This document shows positions 1 through 50,892 of a stretch of DNA of 64,000 bases, in pieces (position 1 is the first letter of the stretch; the number at the start of each line of letters is the position of its first letter). The notes below the pieces were generated by a model. That model was not told the origin of the DNA, did no database searches, and saw only the letters and a list, made by a program, of their open reading frames with translations. Both the position numbers and the translations under genes were made by a program. The stretch is from sequence record OZ195934.1; one strand, given 5' to 3'.

Positions 1-858
1 AGTGTTGCGCATAGCAGGTGCCATACGACTAGCAATAGTTTGCAAGTCAATTGGGATATCTAATGTACCAAGCGCGATACGAGCAACGTCAGCCACTTCA
101 GGCACACTATGATTCGCAGCGCCTTGCAAGCGTTCACGATATACACCGCGAGTTGCAGGGGTTAGAGCAGGCATCACCATTGGCGTGTTCGGAACACGTT
201 TCGCTGGTTTGTCTTCGATCCATTCAGCTTTCACTTCGTCGTGAAACTCTTCAAATCCCGGTACCATATCAGCCGTAACGATAATCGAGCGTGCAGTCGC
301 GATGTCTGGTTCTTTAGACATTTGAGCAGCTAGAATATTGATAGTCTTTTCTTCAGACTCAAGTAGCTTATCGGTATTGTATCCCGGTTTGTTGATAACG
401 AAGAAGCTGAAATCTTCAGCCATTTCATGATCGCCAACGTTTAGAATCTTAGTTGTTTCACAGCCGTAGCGTAGTTTCTTGAATAGCGTTTTGATACGCA
501 TATCGAACATCTTGCCACTGCCTTTCTTTTGTACGCGCATTGATACAGCGTTTGCACGAACTTTCAGCATGAATTCTTGAACAAGTTTAACCAACGTTTC
601 TTGGAACTTTTGTTGATCACCCATATCACGAATAGTTAATCCGCCTTTTTTACCGCGCATTGCAGTAACAGTACAGAACCAAGCGCGTTTAGTACGGTCG
701 CCTAGCCCCGATTTTGTTTTACTTGTAAACGTGACAACGACATCTTTGGTCTCACCAGCCATATCGATGACAAAGTAACGATTGACTTTGGTCGAGCGAG
801 CCGGGTAGTAGTTATAAGTTGAAGTTGCTGTCTCATTTAATTCTTGAAATCCAATCAT
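1..858 (-). CDS. Alt-like virion-packaged protein, N-terminal part (runs off the window)
   Basis: Open frame from ATG at 858 to the window edge (MIGFQELNE TATSTYNYYPARSTKVNRYFVDM...NAVSMRVQKKGSGK); absent from the ORF track because truncated. Late promoter upstream. Weak resemblance to the T4 Alt N-terminus (from memory); no catalytic ART domain visible. Confidence 0.5.
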   Translation of the reverse strand, partial: MIGFQELNETATSTYNYYPARSTKVNRYFVIDMAGETKDVVVTFTSKTKSGLGDRTKRAWFCTVTAMRGKKGGLTIRDMGDQQKFQETLVKLVQEFMLKVRANAVSMRVQKKGSGKMFDMRIKTLFKKLRYGCETTKILNVGDHEMAEDFSFFVINKPGYNTDKLLESEEKTINILAAQMSKEPDIATARSIIVTADMVPGFEEFHDEVKAEWIEDKPAKRVPNTPMVMPALTPATRGVYRERLQGAANHSVPEVADVARIALGTLDIPIDLQTIASRMAPAMRNT

Positions 859-890
859 TTTTTAGACTCGCCTTATTGAAAATATACCTG

Positions 891-898: not shown

Positions 899-950
899 AG
901 AGTGCATTAACACCCATCTAGAACTATTTAAACTTTTTTTACGAAAGTGG

Positions 951-979
951 TTGCATCGAATTCAAAATACGCCTAATAT
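951..979 (+). promoter_or_regulatory. Early sigma70-type promoter, class A
   Basis: TTGCAT-17-TAATAT, followed by ATCGAAACGAAAC at 986-998. Confidence 0.75.
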
Positions 980-1022
980 CTCTACATCGAAACGAAACAC
1001 ACTAATCACAAGAGAGAAAATT

Positions 1023-1541
1023 ATGACTAAACTTAACGCTCAGACTGCTACTAACGCTCAAATCGCTGAATTCTACGGTATGACTCTTGATCCGTCGGGT
1101 ATGCCTTACGCACTTGACGCGAAATCACGTCGTCATTACATCACTGATTTGCGTTCAAAGTTTCGTAAAGAAGCAGCTAAGAAGACTTCACGCAAAGTAG
1201 CTACTGCGACTCGTAAAATTGAATTACCAAGCGCAGAAGAGCATTTAGCGATGCTGAACACTGATTTCACTGAACATCAATGGTTCATTCGCGAATCTCA
1301 GCCGGGTCTTGATATCTCAGAACTTGGTTTACGCTTCTACTTCATCGGCGGTGCTAACATTCATCAACTGAACATTCGCACAAAACACTTCTCAAACAAA
1401 GAGTTAGAGAATTTCTATGCGAACAAGAAGATTCTGAAAGGTCACAAGGGTACTGGTTCAGTCACAATTGGCTCTCTTTCATACGAAGAAGTTGTTCAAA
1501 TCGCACAAGATATGATTGAAAAGTCAGAAAGTGTGATTTAA
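1023..1541 (+). CDS. Early protein, possible remote MotA-CTD-like DNA-binding protein
   Basis: Real start probably ATG 1023 after GAGAG RBS. Basic linker KKTSRKVATATRK, then an alpha/beta domain; see findings. Confidence 0.8.
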   Translation: MTKLNAQTATNAQIAEFYGMTLDPSGMPYALDAKSRRHYITDLRSKFRKEAAKKTSRKVATATRKIELPSAEEHLAMLNTDFTEHQWFIRESQPGLDISELGLRFYFIGGANIHQLNIRTKHFSNKELENFYANKKILKGHKGTGSVTIGSLSYEEVVQIAQDMIEKSESVI

Positions 1542-1566
1542 GTCACGAAAAAGTAGTGTTCGGGTA

Positions 1567-1595
1567 TTGACAGTAACATCGAAATACCCGATAAT
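1567..1595 (+). promoter_or_regulatory. Early promoter inside an inverted repeat
   Basis: TTGACA-17-GATAAT flanked by TCGGGTATT...AATACCCGA. Confidence 0.65.
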
Positions 1596-1640
1596 AAACA
1601 CATCAAGACGACATAGACAACTACTTAAAGAGAGAACATT

Positions 1641-2459
1641 ATGACTATCACTAAAATTCAAATCGAAACTATCGCACAAGACTTAATGAGCGGCAACAAC
1701 GCAATGGGACGCGACCTTATTTCTGAAGGTTGGACATTCGGTTGGTCAACTCGTAAAGCTGCACTTGGTGATTGTTCTTACCGTGACCGTCATCTTCGTC
1801 TTTCTTCAGTGTTTCTAAATGCACGTACGCTAGATGAGCAAATCAACACAATCACACACGAAATGGCTCACGCTATCGCATGGACTGATTTCAACGAGCG
1901 TGGTCACGGTGCAACTTGGAAACGTGTTCATCGTCAACTAGGTGGTACTGCGGAACGTTGTTCTTCAGTTTCTAACCCTGACGCTCTTCCTGATGCAAAA
2001 TACACTGTGTTTTTCATCAACGCAAACGACGAAATCGAAGTTGTTCAAACTACAGACCGTCGCACTAAGAAATTTCAACCACAATACATCAAGTCAATCT
2101 ACTTGCGTGGTCGTAAGTCTGAGACTGAAGGTAAAATTCGTTGTGTAGCAACTGCGACATTCAACGCAATCAAAGCTGACTTAGAAGCTTCTAAAGAGCC
2201 TAAAGCTGAAGTTGCACCTGCTCCAGTAGCTGCTCCTAAGAAAGAAGAGAAAGCAGCACCTGCACCTGCTAAGAAAGTAACTGCACGTGGTGAAGCAGCT
2301 CGTGGTCAAATCGCTGCTAAAGCAATCGCAACGCTTGATTTCACTGACGTATCATTTGAACAACGTGGCAAATACAAAGACTGGTACATTCTTGCAACTG
2401 TTAAAGGCGAGAAATTCGAACAGCGTCTAGACAGCTTCAAAAAGAAAAACAACTTTTAA
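1641..2459 (+). CDS. SprT-like zinc metalloprotease domain protein
   Basis: LGDCSY...IxLS...TITHEMAHA (HExxH)...GHGATWK, typical of SprT; Ala/Pro/Lys linker and small C-terminal domain. Confidence 0.8.
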   Translation: MTITKIQIETIAQDLMSGNNAMGRDLISEGWTFGWSTRKAALGDCSYRDRHLRLSSVFLNARTLDEQINTITHEMAHAIAWTDFNERGHGATWKRVHRQLGGTAERCSSVSNPDALPDAKYTVFFINANDEIEVVQTTDRRTKKFQPQYIKSIYLRGRKSETEGKIRCVATATFNAIKADLEASKEPKAEVAPAPVAAPKKEEKAAPAPAKKVTARGEAARGQIAAKAIATLDFTDVSFEQRGKYKDWYILATVKGEKFEQRLDSFKKKNNF

Positions 2460-2477
2460 GATTTACGAGTAGAGCAT

Positions 2478-2499
2478 AGCCCCGAAAGGGGCTTTTTTT
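2478..2499 (+). terminator. Rho-independent terminator
   Basis: AGCCCC-GAAA-GGGGCT + T7. Confidence 0.9.
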
Positions 2500-2508
2500 A
2501 GGTTTGAG

Positions 2509-2582
2509 CGGAATTATTCCGTCTCATCTTAGTAGTATTAGTGACTTTAGTGATATTAGAGTAATTAGGGGTATTAGTTTAG
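2509..2582. repeat. Palindrome plus six 9-bp TTAG-N5 direct repeats (copy 1)
   Basis: CGGAA-TTA-TTCCG TCTCATC, then TTAG at 2529, 2538, 2547, 2556, 2565, 2574. Confidence 0.9.
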
Positions 2583-2606
2583 AACCACCGCGAATCGTCG
2601 TATAAT
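2577..2606 (+). promoter_or_regulatory. Class B promoter
   Basis: GTTTAGA-17-TATAAT upstream of glutaredoxin. Confidence 0.7.
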
Positions 2607-2624
2607 ACACGTCGAGGTGATGAA

Positions 2625-2867
2625 ATGATAACAATCTACACAATTCCTAACTGTGACGGTTGCCGACATGCAATCGCACTCTGTAAGTTCAAGAAAATCC
2701 CTTTCGAAGAAATCTCGCTTGATTCTGAAGCTAAAATAGCTGCACTCCATAAACGTCTCGGTGGTAATCGTAACATTCGAGTACCGTTAGCTGTTGACTC
2801 TGACGACACGTATATCGGTCACTTACCAGAGCTTAAACAGTACGTTGATAGCAAGCTGTATAAATAG
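2625..2867 (+). CDS. Glutaredoxin (NrdC/NrdH-like)
   Basis: 80 aa, IYTIPNCDGC (CxxC), VP motif, YIG. Confidence 0.85.
   Translation: MITIYTIPNCDGCRHAIALCKFKKIPFEEISLDSEAKIAALHKRLGGNRNIRVPLAVDSDDTYIGHLPELKQYVDSKLYK
2859..2866 (+). promoter_or_regulatory. T4 late promoter
   Basis: Exact TATAAATA upstream of gene 24. Confidence 0.85.
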
Positions 2868-2924
2868 AAGAAACACGCAAATACTCTCCGCTGAAATGCG
2901 GCAATAAATTAAAGGAACGAACAA

Positions 2925-3824
2925 ATGACTGTATCTATCGGTAACGGTTTACCAGACATTGTTACAGTTCAGAAACGACTATATCCGCTTATCTTTACGG
3001 AAATTGTGTCTGAACAACCAACAAAACAGCCAATCGCGACTGCGTACGGCTTTAAAGCTATCAAAGACACTGACGATTCAAGTGGCTGGGGGCAGTGGAA
3101 ATTCTCGCTTGACCGTTGGTCTGCGACTGCCGAAGCAACAAAGCTAAAAACTGATATCTCTCTTGAAGCTATTCAAGACATGGAAGCACTTGGGCTCGGC
3201 ACTGACTTAATCGTTGACTCACTAGCTGATCAAGCGGCAGATGACATCAACACGAATATCATCACTGCACTGAACGCGATTTCAACACTTGGTACTGCGA
3301 TTGACGTTAGCTCAATCACTGGCAAATTCAACAAAGGCCGTGAGTTGTATGCTCTTGCACACGTCGAAGCTTCTAAACTTGAAAAAGAGTCTGGTTGTCA
3401 GGGTTCGTACATCGTAGCAGGCAGCGAGACATTTGGTCTAATCGTTGGTTCTGGTATGGCAAAACGCATTGGTGAATCGAACGTTTATAAATTAGACTCT
3501 GGTCTTAAACTTGTCCATGACAAGTACGCAACGACTGAATACTTCACAGTTGGCGTTAAGAAAGAAATGTCTGATTTCGAAATCTCAAGTCTGATCTTCA
3601 GTCCGTACAATTTCGATGGCGAAACTGGTGGCGGTATTGCTTATCAGCACGAAGGGCAAGACCCTAAGACATTCAACCCAATCTTTGCGATTATCGCACG
3701 ATACGCACTGACAGTTGCACCGCTTGAATCTGATCAAACGGGCGCTAGTGATATCGATTGGGACGATCTTGGTGACAAGGCTAACAGTTCTAAGCTATCA
3801 GCAACATTTGCCGTAACGCTATAG
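2925..3824 (+). CDS. 24: Capsid vertex protein gp24
   Basis: IFTEIVSEQPTKQPIATAYG, KLKTDISLEAIQD, SLIFSPY, IIARYAL: gp23/gp24 family, 299 aa, late promoter. Confidence 0.8.
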   Translation: MTVSIGNGLPDIVTVQKRLYPLIFTEIVSEQPTKQPIATAYGFKAIKDTDDSSGWGQWKFSLDRWSATAEATKLKTDISLEAIQDMEALGLGTDLIVDSLADQAADDINTNIITALNAISTLGTAIDVSSITGKFNKGRELYALAHVEASKLEKESGCQGSYIVAGSETFGLIVGSGMAKRIGESNVYKLDSGLKLVHDKYATTEYFTVGVKKEMSDFEISSLIFSPYNFDGETGGGIAYQHEGQDPKTFNPIFAIIARYALTVAPLESDQTGASDIDWDDLGDKANSSKLSATFAVTL

Positions 3825-3832
3825 GGTGACAC

Positions 3833-4354
3833 ATGAAAACACATTATGTAGATAATAAAGCTCTATACGCATCGATTTGCGAATGGAAAGAAGAAATGAA
3901 GAACGCTGAAGAAGGCGTTTTCGTGCCAGTCCCTGATTTCGTGGCAATTAGTATCATGAAAATCAGCGAGAACTTGACTCGTCGTTACAACTTTAGCAAT
4001 TACACGCAGCCGTGGAAAGAAGAAATGGTTGGTGATGCGATTGAGCATTGCTTACGCTACGTGAAGAACTTCGACACTGAGCGATTCAAAAACCCACACG
4101 CGTATATCACTCGTATCTGTTTCAATGCATTCGTGCAGCGTATTAAGAAAGAACGCCAAGATACAGCGATTAAATATAAAGTATTCTTGTCAGATTCGTC
4201 AAACTACACCGTTGAGGGTGAAGACGTTGATTTCGACTTCATGCAGCAAATGCTAGAACGCGTGAACTCATTCGACGAATCTCGCAAATCAAACAAATCT
4301 GAATCTGCCCCTAGCAAGAAAGACGATTCGAACTTACAAAAATTTTACGATTAA
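3833..4354 (+). CDS. 55: Late-transcription sigma factor gp55
   Basis: HYVDNKALY, NFSNYT, WKEEMVGDAIE, NPHAYITRICFNAFVQRIKKE. Confidence 0.95.
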   Translation: MKTHYVDNKALYASICEWKEEMKNAEEGVFVPVPDFVAISIMKISENLTRRYNFSNYTQPWKEEMVGDAIEHCLRYVKNFDTERFKNPHAYITRICFNAFVQRIKKERQDTAIKYKVFLSDSSNYTVEGEDVDFDFMQQMLERVNSFDESRKSNKSESAPSKKDDSNLQKFYD

Positions 4355-4363
4355 GGAATTAAC

Positions 4364-5800
4364 ATGTTAGGTACCTTTGACTCATTTCTGAGTGAAAATC
4401 GCCGTCAAACTCAGGGTGGTAAAATCTACCCTAAGTTTGGTCAAGTATTTGTTGAGCTAGGCACAGCTTCTACCGACTTCAGCAAAGAAAAAGGCGTTGA
4501 AACAACTATCGGTATGATGGAAAAAGCGAATGAGCTTAAATCTATCATGCAATCTAAACTATTCGAAGACAGCAACGTTGATCACACTAAATTCGACATG
4601 AATCTAAGTGAAAACGTTTCAGTTATCAACTTGCTAATGGAAGAAGAATTCCTAGCATGTAAGCCGACTGAACTTGCGCAACTAAAGTCGATGACCACTG
4701 TGTCTGAAGCTCGTATGCCAAGTCTTGTCGTGAAAGGCGGTGAACTTACGACTATCGTTAGCGAAGCAACTAAGCTTGGTTACAAAAAGTCTGATATTCA
4801 CGTGATCTTCCCGATGGCTGAAATGAAAATCGAACTTGCTGACAGCGACAAGCTAGTGGTTGAAGCACTATCGTTTGATGGACGTACAGCTACTGAAATT
4901 CTGGCAATGGGTTCTCGCATTCAACTTGGCGACGTTTACGTAGTGAGCGAGTCCGTTGAGTCGAACGCTGACGTGCTAGGTCTTGAAGAGATTCGCATCA
5001 ATCGCATGACGCTTGGCGCTCTTAACCGTCACGTTATGAACTGCTTTGTTGTTAAAGAAGCGGCTGAAACGTCATACGCGCACGCTGCGGTTAAAGAAAT
5101 CACTGATCGCCCTGCGCTATCAGGCTTCAAAGCATACGATTTGAAACCAAACGTGACTATGCTTGAACATGCACAAAACGCATTCTCAAAAGACATTGCT
5201 AAAGCTCCGCTTTCTGCAACTGCATGGGAAAAGCTTGTTGATGTGAAAGAAGTGTATTTCGACAATGGTTGGAAACTGAAGCACAACAACACAAGTCTTG
5301 TTCTAACAAACGCTGAAAACGCTATGCGTCATGGTCGTGTTTGTGAAGAATATCGTGTTGAACTGTCTGAAGCAGGTTATCCGCTTCTTGATATGATCGC
5401 GATGATGGAACGCAACGAAGAAATTCGTTGGGACTGTGCTTCGTTTGCTAAACACATGATGAAATTCGACGGTGCTATCACCCCAGAACGTCAATCTGTG
5501 ACAGCATTTACGACTGAATCATCTTCTAATCGCGTATTCCACCCGCATGTGATGTCTGACCTACGTCCAGTTACTGAAGCGGCAGACGACGTTGACAGCT
5601 TGATTCGTGCTATCGCGAATGATCAGTTCAGTTCATTCAAGATCAGTCAAGCATTCTCTGAGCAGATGCTAGATCAAGAAACGCTTTACTCTATGATGGA
5701 ATCAATCGTTTCTGAAGGTATCGACGTTGACGCTGATGGTGATTTGATTACTTTCAAAGTTAATGCGACTCAGTACCACATTCAACTAGACATTAAGTAG
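4364..5800 (+). CDS. Hypothetical 478-aa protein, likely head-internal; degenerate P-loop-like N-domain
   Basis: Starts MLGTFDSFLSE; several (V/L)xE-A/S sites; see findings. Confidence 0.85.
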   Translation: MLGTFDSFLSENRRQTQGGKIYPKFGQVFVELGTASTDFSKEKGVETTIGMMEKANELKSIMQSKLFEDSNVDHTKFDMNLSENVSVINLLMEEEFLACKPTELAQLKSMTTVSEARMPSLVVKGGELTTIVSEATKLGYKKSDIHVIFPMAEMKIELADSDKLVVEALSFDGRTATEILAMGSRIQLGDVYVVSESVESNADVLGLEEIRINRMTLGALNRHVMNCFVVKEAAETSYAHAAVKEITDRPALSGFKAYDLKPNVTMLEHAQNAFSKDIAKAPLSATAWEKLVDVKEVYFDNGWKLKHNNTSLVLTNAENAMRHGRVCEEYRVELSEAGYPLLDMIAMMERNEEIRWDCASFAKHMMKFDGAITPERQSVTAFTTESSSNRVFHPHVMSDLRPVTEAADDVDSLIRAIANDQFSSFKISQAFSEQMLDQETLYSMMESIVSEGIDVDADGDLITFKVNATQYHIQLDIK

Positions 5801-6532: not shown

Positions 6533-6562
6533 GTTTAATACGTCATCAATCTGTTTTATACT
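6533..6562 (+). promoter_or_regulatory. Class B promoter
   Basis: GTTTAAT-17-TATACT in tandem with the class A promoter. Confidence 0.7.
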
Positions 6563-6588
6563 ATGAATCTACTTGAGAGAACAATATT

Positions 6589-27185: not shown

Positions 27186-27215
27186 GTTTAATCTCATGTG
27201 TTCTGTGCATATAAT
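27186..27215 (+). promoter_or_regulatory. Class B promoter
   Basis: GTTTAAT-17-TATAAT. Confidence 0.7.
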
Positions 27216-27243
27216 GTACAAAACACAACGAGAGAGATTAACA

Positions 27244-36617: not shown

Positions 36618-36647
36618 GTTTAATAGCACGCACCGTCGTGCTATTAT
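36618..36647 (+). promoter_or_regulatory. Class B promoter for folE
   Basis: GTTTAAT-17-TATTAT inside TAATAGCACG/CGTGCTATTA. Confidence 0.7.
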
Positions 36648-40435: not shown

Positions 40436-41040
40436 TGTGCGGTCTATTCGCTGCAAAGACTAAAAAGGCGCTAGTTGAACTAGCGCAACATAACATGCAT
40501 CGTGGTTCGCGTACGCACTCAGTGACTGGCATTAAAGGCGGTCAGTTGTATGTCAATCGATACGACGGTGAGTTCAGTGCTGACAATGTACCAGACGGGT
40601 ATGACTTCTATATCTGTCACGTGCAAGCACCGACTAGTGCTCACGCAAAGTCACATCCCGCAGTTGTTGTACGCTCAGAGGGCAGACGTAACTTTGCATC
40701 ATGCGTATGGCACAATGGCATTCTGAAAGACGACTACATGAAAAAGCAGCGATATGATTGGGACACCCGGCACATCGCAGACACGTTCCCGCAATCGCTC
40801 GACGAGTACGATGGTACGTTTGCTTGTTTTTACTACGCACTGCGCGAATTAAGCGTGTTTCGTAATGAGATCAGTCCACTGTTCATGAGCGAAGATGGCG
40901 ATGCTTTCAGTAGCACACGAACAATCATAACTCCCGACGCACTTGAACCAAATAAAGTGTTTAACATCGACCTAACGTCGTTTAAAATGTCGCTTGTTAG
41001 AGAGTTCAAAACAGTAGAAAATCCATATTTCTTTTTATGA
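40435..41040 (+). CDS. Free-standing class II (Ntn) glutamine amidotransferase
   Basis: N-terminal MCGLF, HRG, CHVQAPT, WHNGIL, DT, GTFAC; coupled to queC. Confidence 0.85.
   Translation: MCGLFAAKTKKALVELAQHNMHRGSRTHSVTGIKGGQLYVNRYDGEFSADNVPDGYDFYICHVQAPTSAHAKSHPAVVVRSEGRRNFASCVWHNGILKDDYMKKQRYDWDTRHIADTFPQSLDEYDGTFACFYYALRELSVFRNEISPLFMSEDGDAFSSTRTIITPDALEPNKVFNIDLTSFKMSLVREFKTVENPYFFL
40959..40988 (+). promoter_or_regulatory. Class B promoter for the gene 31 operon
   Basis: GTTTAAC-17-TAAAAT inside the 3' end of the GATase gene. Confidence 0.6.
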
Positions 41041-48780: not shown

Positions 48781-50892
48781 ATGATTATTCACACTCCTGA
48801 TTCAACCGTACAAACGTCTGGTAAGATGCGTACGGCTGGTTTTAATATGAAAGCAAGTGCCAAAGGCTTTCGCATCATTTCAACAACGCTTTACAAAGAT
48901 CCAATTCTAGCTATTGTGCGTGAGCTAACGTGTAATGGCTGGGATGCTCATCAAATGAATGGCAACAAAGACACGGCAATCGAAGTACACTTACCGAACC
49001 AGTTTGAACCTTGGTTCAGTGTGAAAGATTTCGGCTGTGGTATGTCTGATGATGATATCTTTGGCGTTTACACAACTGTTTTCGACTCAACGAAAGACGA
49101 CTCGAACGACGTTATTGGCGCAATGGGTCTTGGTTCAAAGACACCGTTCAGCTACAACAACGGTCAATCGTTTACTGTTAAGTCAGTCAAAGACGGTCTG
49201 AAAGCTGTGTACTCTGCATATCTTGATCGTGGTGAGCCTGCTATCACGTGTATGAACGAGCCTGCACCAACTGATGAACCAGATGGCGTAGAAGTTATCG
49301 TTCCTGTGCGTAAAGAAGACTTCAGTCGCTTCAAAGACGCTGCAAACAGTGTAATGCCGTACTTCAAGTCGCCTGTTGTTGACACCAATATCGCGCTAGA
49401 TAAACGCGAGTTCGTACACATGGATGGCTACTACACTGAGACGAAGACTTACCACTATCGTTCAACTAACGTGTACGCAGTGATGGGTAACGTTTGCTAT
49501 CCGCTGAACTCTGGTTACATTGAAGGCATCAATGATGTGCGTAGCTACTTCAAGTCAAGTGATCTATACATTGAATTCGCTATCGGTGAGCTAGATGTAA
49601 GTGCGTCACGTGAAGAGTTGCACTATGATGACCGTACAATCGAGAACATCAATACACGTGTCAATGAAATCAACGAAGGTTTCTTGAAACAGTCGCAAGA
49701 TTGGGTCGATGAGCAGAACTTTAAGCATATCAGTGAAGCATGGCGCGCTTGTGATAATCGCTTCAGTGACGTGATCATGGGTAAGATGATGTTTGGCGAT
49801 GTTAAAGTCAACACATATCGCGACCAAATTCAGCGTGAGTTCTTGATCGATGACAAGCGTGGGCTTGGTGGTAAGACAGTGATGTTCCGTCCAGAGTCAA
49901 TGAACAAAGAGGGCGTTGCGCGTCGTACTGATTATCATCGTGCGTCTGACATTCTTGATGTGCGTCGCGACTTCGAAGCTAAACCAATCATGGTTGTTCA
50001 CGATGACTTGAAGACTGGTGGTGTTAGCATTGTCAAAGAGTACGTTCGTCAAACTCGTAATGCTGTGTATTACCATCACGACGAGAAATACTCAACGACT
50101 GGTACGATTCTGCTGTTGAAAGCGCGTCTGCGTGACAGTGAATACGTTGTGCTTAAAACGTCTGACTTGAAAGCTGACTACACGCCAGAGAAGAAGCCGA
50201 AGAGCAAGAACGCCAAACCAGTAGCGCGTACTGTTCAACTGTATCGCGTGACGATTGGTGAAGACGACGTGCGCTCGATTGATGTTCATGAGCTTGATAA
50301 GAAAGTTCTACGTGAAGATGGTGTTCACTTCGTGAGCTTGTATCGTGACTACATCGAACGCAACATCGGTGATGAACATGGCATGGAATACAATCGCGGT
50401 GTTGGTCTTGTTGAAACGATCATGCGTCTGAAAAATCTTAAAGAAGTGTATATCGTGCGTCGTGGTGAGATTGAACACATCAAATCAAACAAGAACGCGA
50501 TTAATCTTTTCGATTTGAAGTTTAACAAGCGTGAAGTACGTAGTAAAATCGACTGGAAGACGTACACGATCACTGACAATCTACACGGGTGGCGTTGTGC
50601 GCTTAAATCTGCGTGGTACAATGATGCAGTGCGCGAGTGCTTCGGCTATGAACGTACCGAACACACATGCAACACAACTATCGACCGTTTGTGTTCTGAA
50701 TTCCCAGTTATCAAGCAAGTGCGCGAAGCTGAGAAAGAAAAGCATTTAGCGAAACTGATGAAGATTCAAGAGAATCCGCGCTATCAGTTAGCATGGAACT
50801 TGATTGACAACTGCACGTCTAATTCAGATGCGCAACAACTAATGACCCTATTGAGAGGAAAACGTAATGGTAAACTTACCAATCGAAACTAA
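48781..50892 (+). CDS. rIIA: rIIA protein
   Basis: LYKDPILAIVRELTCNGWDAH, VKDFGCGMS, STK, IGAMGLGSKTPFSY (GHKL). Confidence 0.95.
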   Translation: MIIHTPDSTVQTSGKMRTAGFNMKASAKGFRIISTTLYKDPILAIVRELTCNGWDAHQMNGNKDTAIEVHLPNQFEPWFSVKDFGCGMSDDDIFGVYTTVFDSTKDDSNDVIGAMGLGSKTPFSYNNGQSFTVKSVKDGLKAVYSAYLDRGEPAITCMNEPAPTDEPDGVEVIVPVRKEDFSRFKDAANSVMPYFKSPVVDTNIALDKREFVHMDGYYTETKTYHYRSTNVYAVMGNVCYPLNSGYIEGINDVRSYFKSSDLYIEFAIGELDVSASREELHYDDRTIENINTRVNEINEGFLKQSQDWVDEQNFKHISEAWRACDNRFSDVIMGKMMFGDVKVNTYRDQIQREFLIDDKRGLGGKTVMFRPESMNKEGVARRTDYHRASDILDVRRDFEAKPIMVVHDDLKTGGVSIVKEYVRQTRNAVYYHHDEKYSTTGTILLLKARLRDSEYVVLKTSDLKADYTPEKKPKSKNAKPVARTVQLYRVTIGEDDVRSIDVHELDKKVLREDGVHFVSLYRDYIERNIGDEHGMEYNRGVGLVETIMRLKNLKEVYIVRRGEIEHIKSNKNAINLFDLKFNKREVRSKIDWKTYTITDNLHGWRCALKSAWYNDAVRECFGYERTEHTCNTTIDRLCSEFPVIKQVREAEKEKHLAKLMKIQENPRYQLAWNLIDNCTSNSDAQQLMTLLRGKRNGKLTNRN
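50520..50549 (+). promoter_or_regulatory. Class B promoter inside rIIA (for rIIB)
   Basis: GTTTAAC-17-TAAAAT. Confidence 0.55.

Follow-up and report, generated by a model that had tools for sequence, protein, structure and literature searches.

A full-length Alc homologue adjoining alt in a KVP40-type Vibrio phage without the hmC pathway

The closest described counterpart of the gene analysed here is alc of phage T4, whose product terminates transcription at many discrete sites on dC-DNA but spares hmC-DNA, is blocked by mutations in the β dispensable region I, and acts by a mechanism that a 2010 review called unknown (PMC2988021). A 2021 list of proteins with no known structural homologues included T4 Alc, and Alc orthologues have been noted in a subset of jumbo phages (Iyer et al. 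2021, PMC7824862). Petrov et al. (2010) described alc and gene 42 as distributed alike, and the vibriophages KVP40 and nt-1 as being without gene 56. These two phages have also been described as encoding asiA without a recognisable motA, and because KVP40 AsiA co-activates with T4 MotA in vitro, a functional analogue of MotA may exist (Hinton 2010, PMC2988021).

The window analysed here, a stretch of 64,000 nucleotides from sequence record OZ195934.1, belongs to a phage of this kind. Vibrio phage D483 and its siblings match bases 900-4400 at 100% identity, and Vibrio phage 6E35.1a (MW824377.1) matches them at 99.9%; these phages form a group of Straboviridae of the KVP40 (Schizotequatrovirus) type, with genomes of ~253 kb and Vibrio crassostreae as the isolation host. 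The ORF that begins with the ATG at 1023 and ends with the TAA at 1539-1541 encodes 172 aa and is, as judged from sequence comparison, a real gene; tblastn recovered 58 phage records with a homologue of the protein over at least 80% of its length. The original prediction had read this protein as a remote MotA-like activator of middle transcription, whereas we found it to be a full-length homologue of Alc without a MotA sequence signal.

Several profile and pairwise searches support this assignment. The protein matched the Pfam family Phage ALC protein (PF17527) at 82.6 bits against a curated cut-off of 25 (E 3.5e-23) and PHROG 1253, 'inhibitor of host transcription', at E 4.3e-30, with residues 5-166 aligned to positions 2-168 of the 169 in the profile. 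BLASTP aligned residues 4-165 colinearly with residues 1-166 of T4 Alc (NC_000866) at 25% identity (E 2e-8), and the two proteins, of 172 and 167 aa, are colinear over their full length and have the conserved motifs in common. The same gene is named alc in the GenBank record of Vibrio phage 6E35.1a (MW824377.1), and the KVP40 orthologue, KVP40.0060, bears the RefSeq name 'inhibitor of host transcription'. Taken together with the earlier report of Alc orthologues (PMC7824862), these matches and existing names make the assignment secure and not new. We conclude from its sequence that the 172-aa protein is a full-length T4 Alc homologue and that the gene is an ordinary one, and since it was already annotated as an alc homologue, we find no support for reading it as a MotA-like activator.

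The family to which the protein belongs, as delimited by an exhaustive HMMER search of 1.84 billion cluster representatives, is small and phage-restricted, comprising 18 clusters, 13 of them with E ≤1e-10; both T4 Alc and the Vibrio protein come from T4-like myoviruses. An alignment of 27 Alc sequences showed a mean column identity of 41%, with D42-L43-R44, L78, Q93-P94 and Y106 near-invariant, and at least 90% of the family sequences keep D42, L43, R44, R90, Q93, P94, G95 and Y106; TDLR, Q-P and Y106 are thus motifs common to the family alignment. A search of NCBIfam with the 172-aa protein gave no match, and a sequence search of the PDB returned chance pentapeptide-repeat matches only, with no solved Alc-family structure among them.

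When the DNA between alt and alc was compared among six diverged Schizotequatrovirus-type phages, the window included, a conserved arrangement of promoter-like elements was seen upstream of the gene (Table 1). The sequence TAnTAT occupies the same alignment position in the window and in four of the five other phages, the hexamer of phage F86 lying one column upstream, and the spacer between the −35 and −10 elements varies among the six. The A/T-rich tract that precedes the −35 element is possibly UP-element-like, and the block CATCGAAACGA downstream of the −10 hexamer is probably the transcript start or part of the 5' leader. The sequence AGAGAGAA, 5-12 nt 5' of the ATG, hardly varies among the six phages, AGCGAGAA being the one variant. 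The alignment is therefore good comparative evidence that the host-type promoter is functional and that translation starts at ATG 1023. A strong class A promoter had been claimed at this position; its presence and conservation were borne out but its strength was not. TTGCAT-17-TAATAT agrees with the σ70 consensus at only 7 of 12 positions, which explains why a simple consensus scan missed it. As a separate observation, the RefSeq start of KVP40.0060 (NC_005083.2) lies ~115 nt 5' of the ATG that is conserved in all six phages, so that the annotated CDS would span the conserved promoter; this annotated start is probably too early.

Table 1. Positions in the window of the alc homologue, its predicted domains and upstream elements, and features of neighbouring DNA
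Feature	Position	Strand	Basis or remark
alt-like ADP-ribosyltransferase, divergent upstream gene	1-859	-	
A/T-rich tract TATTTAAACTTTTTTT, 5' of the −35 element	925-940	+	sequence; largely kept in six-phage alignment
−35-like hexamer TTGCAT	951-956	+	core GGTTGC (949-954) invariant in six phages
−10 hexamer TAATAT	974-979	+	17 nt 3' of the −35 hexamer
Block CATCGAAACGA, 3' of the −10 hexamer	985-995	+	nearly invariant in six-phage alignment
Ribosome-binding site AAGAGAGAA	1010-1018	+	sequence and six-phage alignment
alc homologue, 172 aa and stop codon	1023-1541	+	Pfam, PHROG, BLASTP, MW824377.1 annotation
N-terminal domain, aa 1-63: short helix, β hairpin, long basic helix (predicted)	1023-1211	+	AlphaFold model
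Low-confidence linker, aa 64-70, end of K/R-rich stretch (predicted)	1212-1232	+	block pLDDT 62, residues 51-70
C-terminal α/β domain, aa 71-172 (predicted)	1233-1538	+	domain model
Near-consensus promoter of the SprT-like gene, TTGACA-17-GATAAT	1567-1595		
SprT-like gene, next after alc	1641-2459	+	Pfam E 8.7e-18
Terminator-like hairpin 3' of the SprT-like gene	2478-2493		
Short gp24-type head vertex protein, 299 aa	2925-3824	+	matches C-terminal part only of the Gp23 profile
gp55 late σ factor, directly after the gp24-type gene	3833-4354	+	
GTTTAA-N14-20-TAnnnT examples	6533-6564, 27186-27217, 36618-36647, 40959-40988, 50520-50549		

The protein strings on which the likeness to MotA had been founded were all found in the protein (ATRK, AEEHLAML, QWFIRE, GLRFYFIG, LNIRTKHFSNKELENF, KGTGSV and EEVVQIAQDM), and the T4 MotA strings set beside them (KRATRK, GFVLKK, GIRNFEI, MRIFGYKMMEHHIQKF, KNGNV and ENIEAVITVASEL) were accurate. 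At the level of whole sequences and profiles, the comparison was negative: BLASTP of the 172-aa protein against T4 MotA gave a non-significant E of 37, hhalign of the Alc family against an 18-member MotA alignment gave probabilities of 1.2% and 0.5%, and neither MotA_activ (PF09114) nor MotCF (PF09158) matched the protein in Pfam at E up to 1. A six-frame search of MW824377.1 detected AsiA (PF09010) at 122.6 bits, and both MotCF and MotA_activ were absent at E up to 10; in the same search T4, the positive control, scored 232 bits for PF09158 and 207 bits for PF09114. The statement that AsiA is present without motA was thereby confirmed for this near-identical genome.

A genome with asiA and without motA, in a type of phage for which a MotA analogue has been proposed because KVP40 AsiA co-activates with T4 MotA in vitro (PMC2988021), would offer a place for the activator originally envisaged, in which a double-wing C-terminal domain and a basic linker bind a promoter element and activate a middle class of genes with AsiA. 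The missing sequence signal for either MotA domain argues against assigning that role to this gene, as does its orthology to Alc, a terminator and not an activator; T4 encodes both Alc and MotA, indicating that Alc is a separate family and no stand-in for MotA. KVP40-type phages have long been without a recognised MotA partner for their AsiA, and the alc homologue does not supply one.

Structure prediction provided a further comparison. A full-length AlphaFold2 model built from a 25-sequence family alignment, with the T4 and VR5 Alc sequences left out, had a pLDDT of 88, and the C-terminal domain modelled alone had a pLDDT of 93.6 and a pTM of 0.86. The long basic helix of the predicted N-terminal domain spans aa 40-63 and carries the family TDLR motif, and the basic residues of the linker stretch are kept across the Alc family; a K/R-rich stretch between domains is also a point in favour of a MotA analogue. 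In the model, the C-terminal domain follows the order α-β-β-β-β-α-β-β-α, the fifth strand being a two-residue bridge only, and bears the conserved R-E-S/T-Q-P-G hairpin. It therefore has three helices and six strands, the composition described for the MotA C-terminal domain in the literature.

Foldseek searches of the Alc-homologue models against 350,542 PDB chains gave no match at E ≤1e-3. With the full model, T4 MotA (1KAF, 5JLT and 6K4Y chain M) ranked 2, 3, 6 and 8, at E 0.13-0.31 and TM scores by target of 0.45-0.51, and with the domain model T4 MotA chains ranked 7, 15, 19 and 24. A fold comparison with the MotA C-terminal domain by Foldseek or HHpred, which had been suggested along with the original prediction, thus does place MotA among the nearest folds but with E no lower than 0.13, TM no higher than 0.51 and an hhalign probability of ~1%. 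Residues 67-167 of the protein fall on MotA residues 106-211 in one and the same register in the by-eye alignment, in the best (non-significant) hhalign alignment and in the structural alignments, and this register sets the most conserved part of Alc, the hairpin R90-E-S-Q93-P94, on the invariant R135-S-N137 of MotA. Of the likeness first proposed, the register drawn by eye therefore recurs, whereas the sequence part does not hold and the likeness in fold lies within background. Structural matches to full-length MotA covered the C-terminal domain only. The N-terminal domain neither superposes on that of MotA nor matches PF09114, in agreement with the earlier description of it as shorter and unrelated, and the activation domain of MotA has no counterpart in the Alc homologue.

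The extent of this background is evident from the other proteins retrieved: models of SycT, YjbR, YbjN, Arp2/3 p20, DUF1801 and DUF5655 match the C-terminal domain at TM 0.5-0.67. A search of the Swiss-Prot part of the AlphaFold database returned no phage entries, so MotA is unranked there. We take the nearest folds to be those grouped in SCOP as secretion-chaperone-like, YjbR, DUF5655 and YdhG-like α+β domains. Many such domains are nuclease accessory domains, without sequence relation to the Alc homologue; the C-terminal fold was predicted fused to GIY-YIG, GmrSD_N, HNH, PLD and PD-(D/E)XK nucleases, and also in DUF5655 proteins. The functions of these domains run from protein chaperones to DNA binding, and the fold alone is therefore not predictive. 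The fold class guessed at the outset was probably right, judging from the models, with the MotA domain among the nearest solved examples. The likeness between Alc and MotA appears to be real, weak and consistent, yet it lies within background; the evidence neither singles out MotA nor establishes homology. In function the two differ, the MotCF protein MotA (PF09158) being a promoter activator and Alc acting on elongation. For the protein as a MotA analogue, then, the alignment of a close solved fold over the whole C-terminal domain is offset by the failure of the N-terminal domains to superpose and by fold scores that unrelated proteins equal.

The analysis shows the family membership, the domain layout, the conserved promoter and the absence of both motA and the hmC pathway. 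On the whole, we think it reasonably probable that the gene is the Schizotequatrovirus orthologue of T4 alc, expressed early from the conserved σ70-type promoter and contributing to host shut-off through RNA polymerase. The conserved promoter, divergent from alt, suggests that the alc homologue is probably made early; it would be transcribed divergently from alt by unmodified host RNA polymerase. By homology with T4 Alc, the protein would most likely act on the elongation complex of host RNA polymerase, and premature termination on host DNA would follow as one part of host shut-off. The C-terminal double-wing or secretion-chaperone-like domain might read duplex DNA, a role suggested by the prediction of the same fold on several kinds of nuclease and by its being the DNA-binding fold of MotA, and the polymerase might be held by the N-terminal domain or by a portion of the C-terminal sheet. 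T4 Alc seemingly binds neither DNA nor RNA alone (PMC2988021), which counts against this explanation. A confident model of Alc and a C-terminal fold class associated with DNA nevertheless make such a division testable, with the C-terminal domain as the putative DNA reader and the rest of the protein holding the polymerase.

The difficulty lies in how an Alc of this kind would tell host from phage DNA, because the selectivity of T4 Alc rests on the hmC pathway, whereas the Vibrio phage genome is without that pathway and its DNA contains dPreQ1. We found one thymidylate-synthase-family gene each in MW824377.1, KVP40, F86, phiKT1024 and D479, compared with two, td and gene 42, in T4 and VR5. Neither dCMP hydroxymethylase nor β-glucosyltransferase was found in the MW824377.1 genome, and the way in which T4 spares phage DNA therefore cannot apply. 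The Alc family thus occurs in phages without the hmC pathway once thought to accompany it, implying either another DNA mark that is read by Alc or a second Alc function. The co-distribution of alc with gene 42 (Petrov et al. 2010) fails, as profile searches place Alc in phages without gene 42.

A candidate for another mark is present in these phages. MW824377.1 encodes queC, queF, a tgt-like gene (DpdA2), folE and queD; the DpdA2-like gene, missed by the Pfam TGT model, was taken from the annotation of the record. In the DNA of 6E351A, ~15% of dG is replaced by dPreQ1, as determined by mass spectrometry (PMC12028318). QueC was also found in KVP40 and F86. The substituents of dPreQ1 (at C7) and of hmC (at C5) both occupy the major groove of one G:C pair, so dPreQ1 could in principle do the job of hmC. 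Alc homologues were also observed in phiKT1024 (OM249648.1) and D479 (OZ195776.1), which lack both gene 42 and a true QueC and thus combine Alc with no DNA modification pathway detectable by gene 42 and QueC searches. For this reason we rejected the proposal that Alc homologues always occur with a 7-deazaguanine cluster; among the marks by which host and phage DNA could be told apart, dPreQ1 is a candidate, but it cannot be the general answer.

These distributions bear on a different, less probable reading, to which we give only tentative credence, that the Alc fold has been retained with a drifted function. Without hmC, the protein would not discriminate between host and phage DNA and would be a general modulator of RNA polymerase, for example by ending early transcription or by partnering Alt and AsiA, or it would gain selectivity through host DNA degradation or sequence bias. 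An identity of just 25% to T4 Alc means that function may have drifted, and the existence of Alc-bearing genomes without gene 42 and β-glucosyltransferase, two of them also without QueC, points the same way, as does the gene order, since alc always adjoins alt in KVP40-type phages, unlike the rnlA-alc-pseT.3 neighbourhood of T4. However, the protein keeps the whole length and the most conserved motifs of the family, arguing for a conserved core activity, and a modification at 15% of G residues, as in 6E351A DNA, could still mark phage DNA as self.

Doubtful, and lower still in our estimate, is a broader proposal in which Alc and MotA would have a double-wing DNA-reading domain of common origin. 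At the elongation complex, Alc would then detect modified bases by sitting astride the major groove of duplex DNA, in the manner of the C-terminal domain of MotA, which straddles modified DNA at promoters, and the Alc of KVP40-type phages would have been re-tuned to dPreQ1 or to a new role. The likeness between the Alc C-terminal domain and the MotA double wing, weak in the models but consistent, is worth keeping in mind, as is the finding that some phages have Alc but no hmC.

The middle activator first proposed was expected to act on promoters of the form GTTTAA-17-TAnnnT. With this exact spacing the motif is not enriched, occurring once in the 64-kb window against 0.59 expected, but with spacers of 14-20 nt it occurs 13 times against 4.35 expected, a number reached in none of 100 shuffles, and 10 of the 13 sites are on the + strand. 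The class thus survives only in its relaxed form, GTTTAA-N14-20-TAnnnT, which may on this count be a real promoter class. The over-representation would suit a MotA analogue in the genome, but a single site with the exact spacing and a motif with no link to the protein do little for this particular gene, and given its orthology to Alc we regard its action as the MotA analogue as very improbable.

The gene order alt (minus strand), alc, sprT-like, nrdH, gene 24 and gene 55 is identical in KVP40. Located ~30 nt before the alt start, on the minus strand at 890-899, is the sequence TCATAAATAC, conserved in five of the six phages. The T4 late-promoter motif is TATAAATA, to which this block is close, and such a late-promoter-like element would fit alt as a late, virion-packaged gene. 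The SprT-like protein encoded next after alc continues into an Ala/Pro/Lys-rich linker and a small C-terminal domain, and one phage SprT protein in BFVD has a domain with the fold of the Alc C-terminal domain. Elsewhere in MW824377.1, outside the window, a 243-aa protein of PHROG 15600 (187172-187903, minus strand; no Pfam match) is encoded on the strand of the asiA homologue, 5 bp upstream of it, a position that makes it a candidate MotA analogue, and asiA is closely followed downstream by a Tad2-like anti-Thoeris gene.
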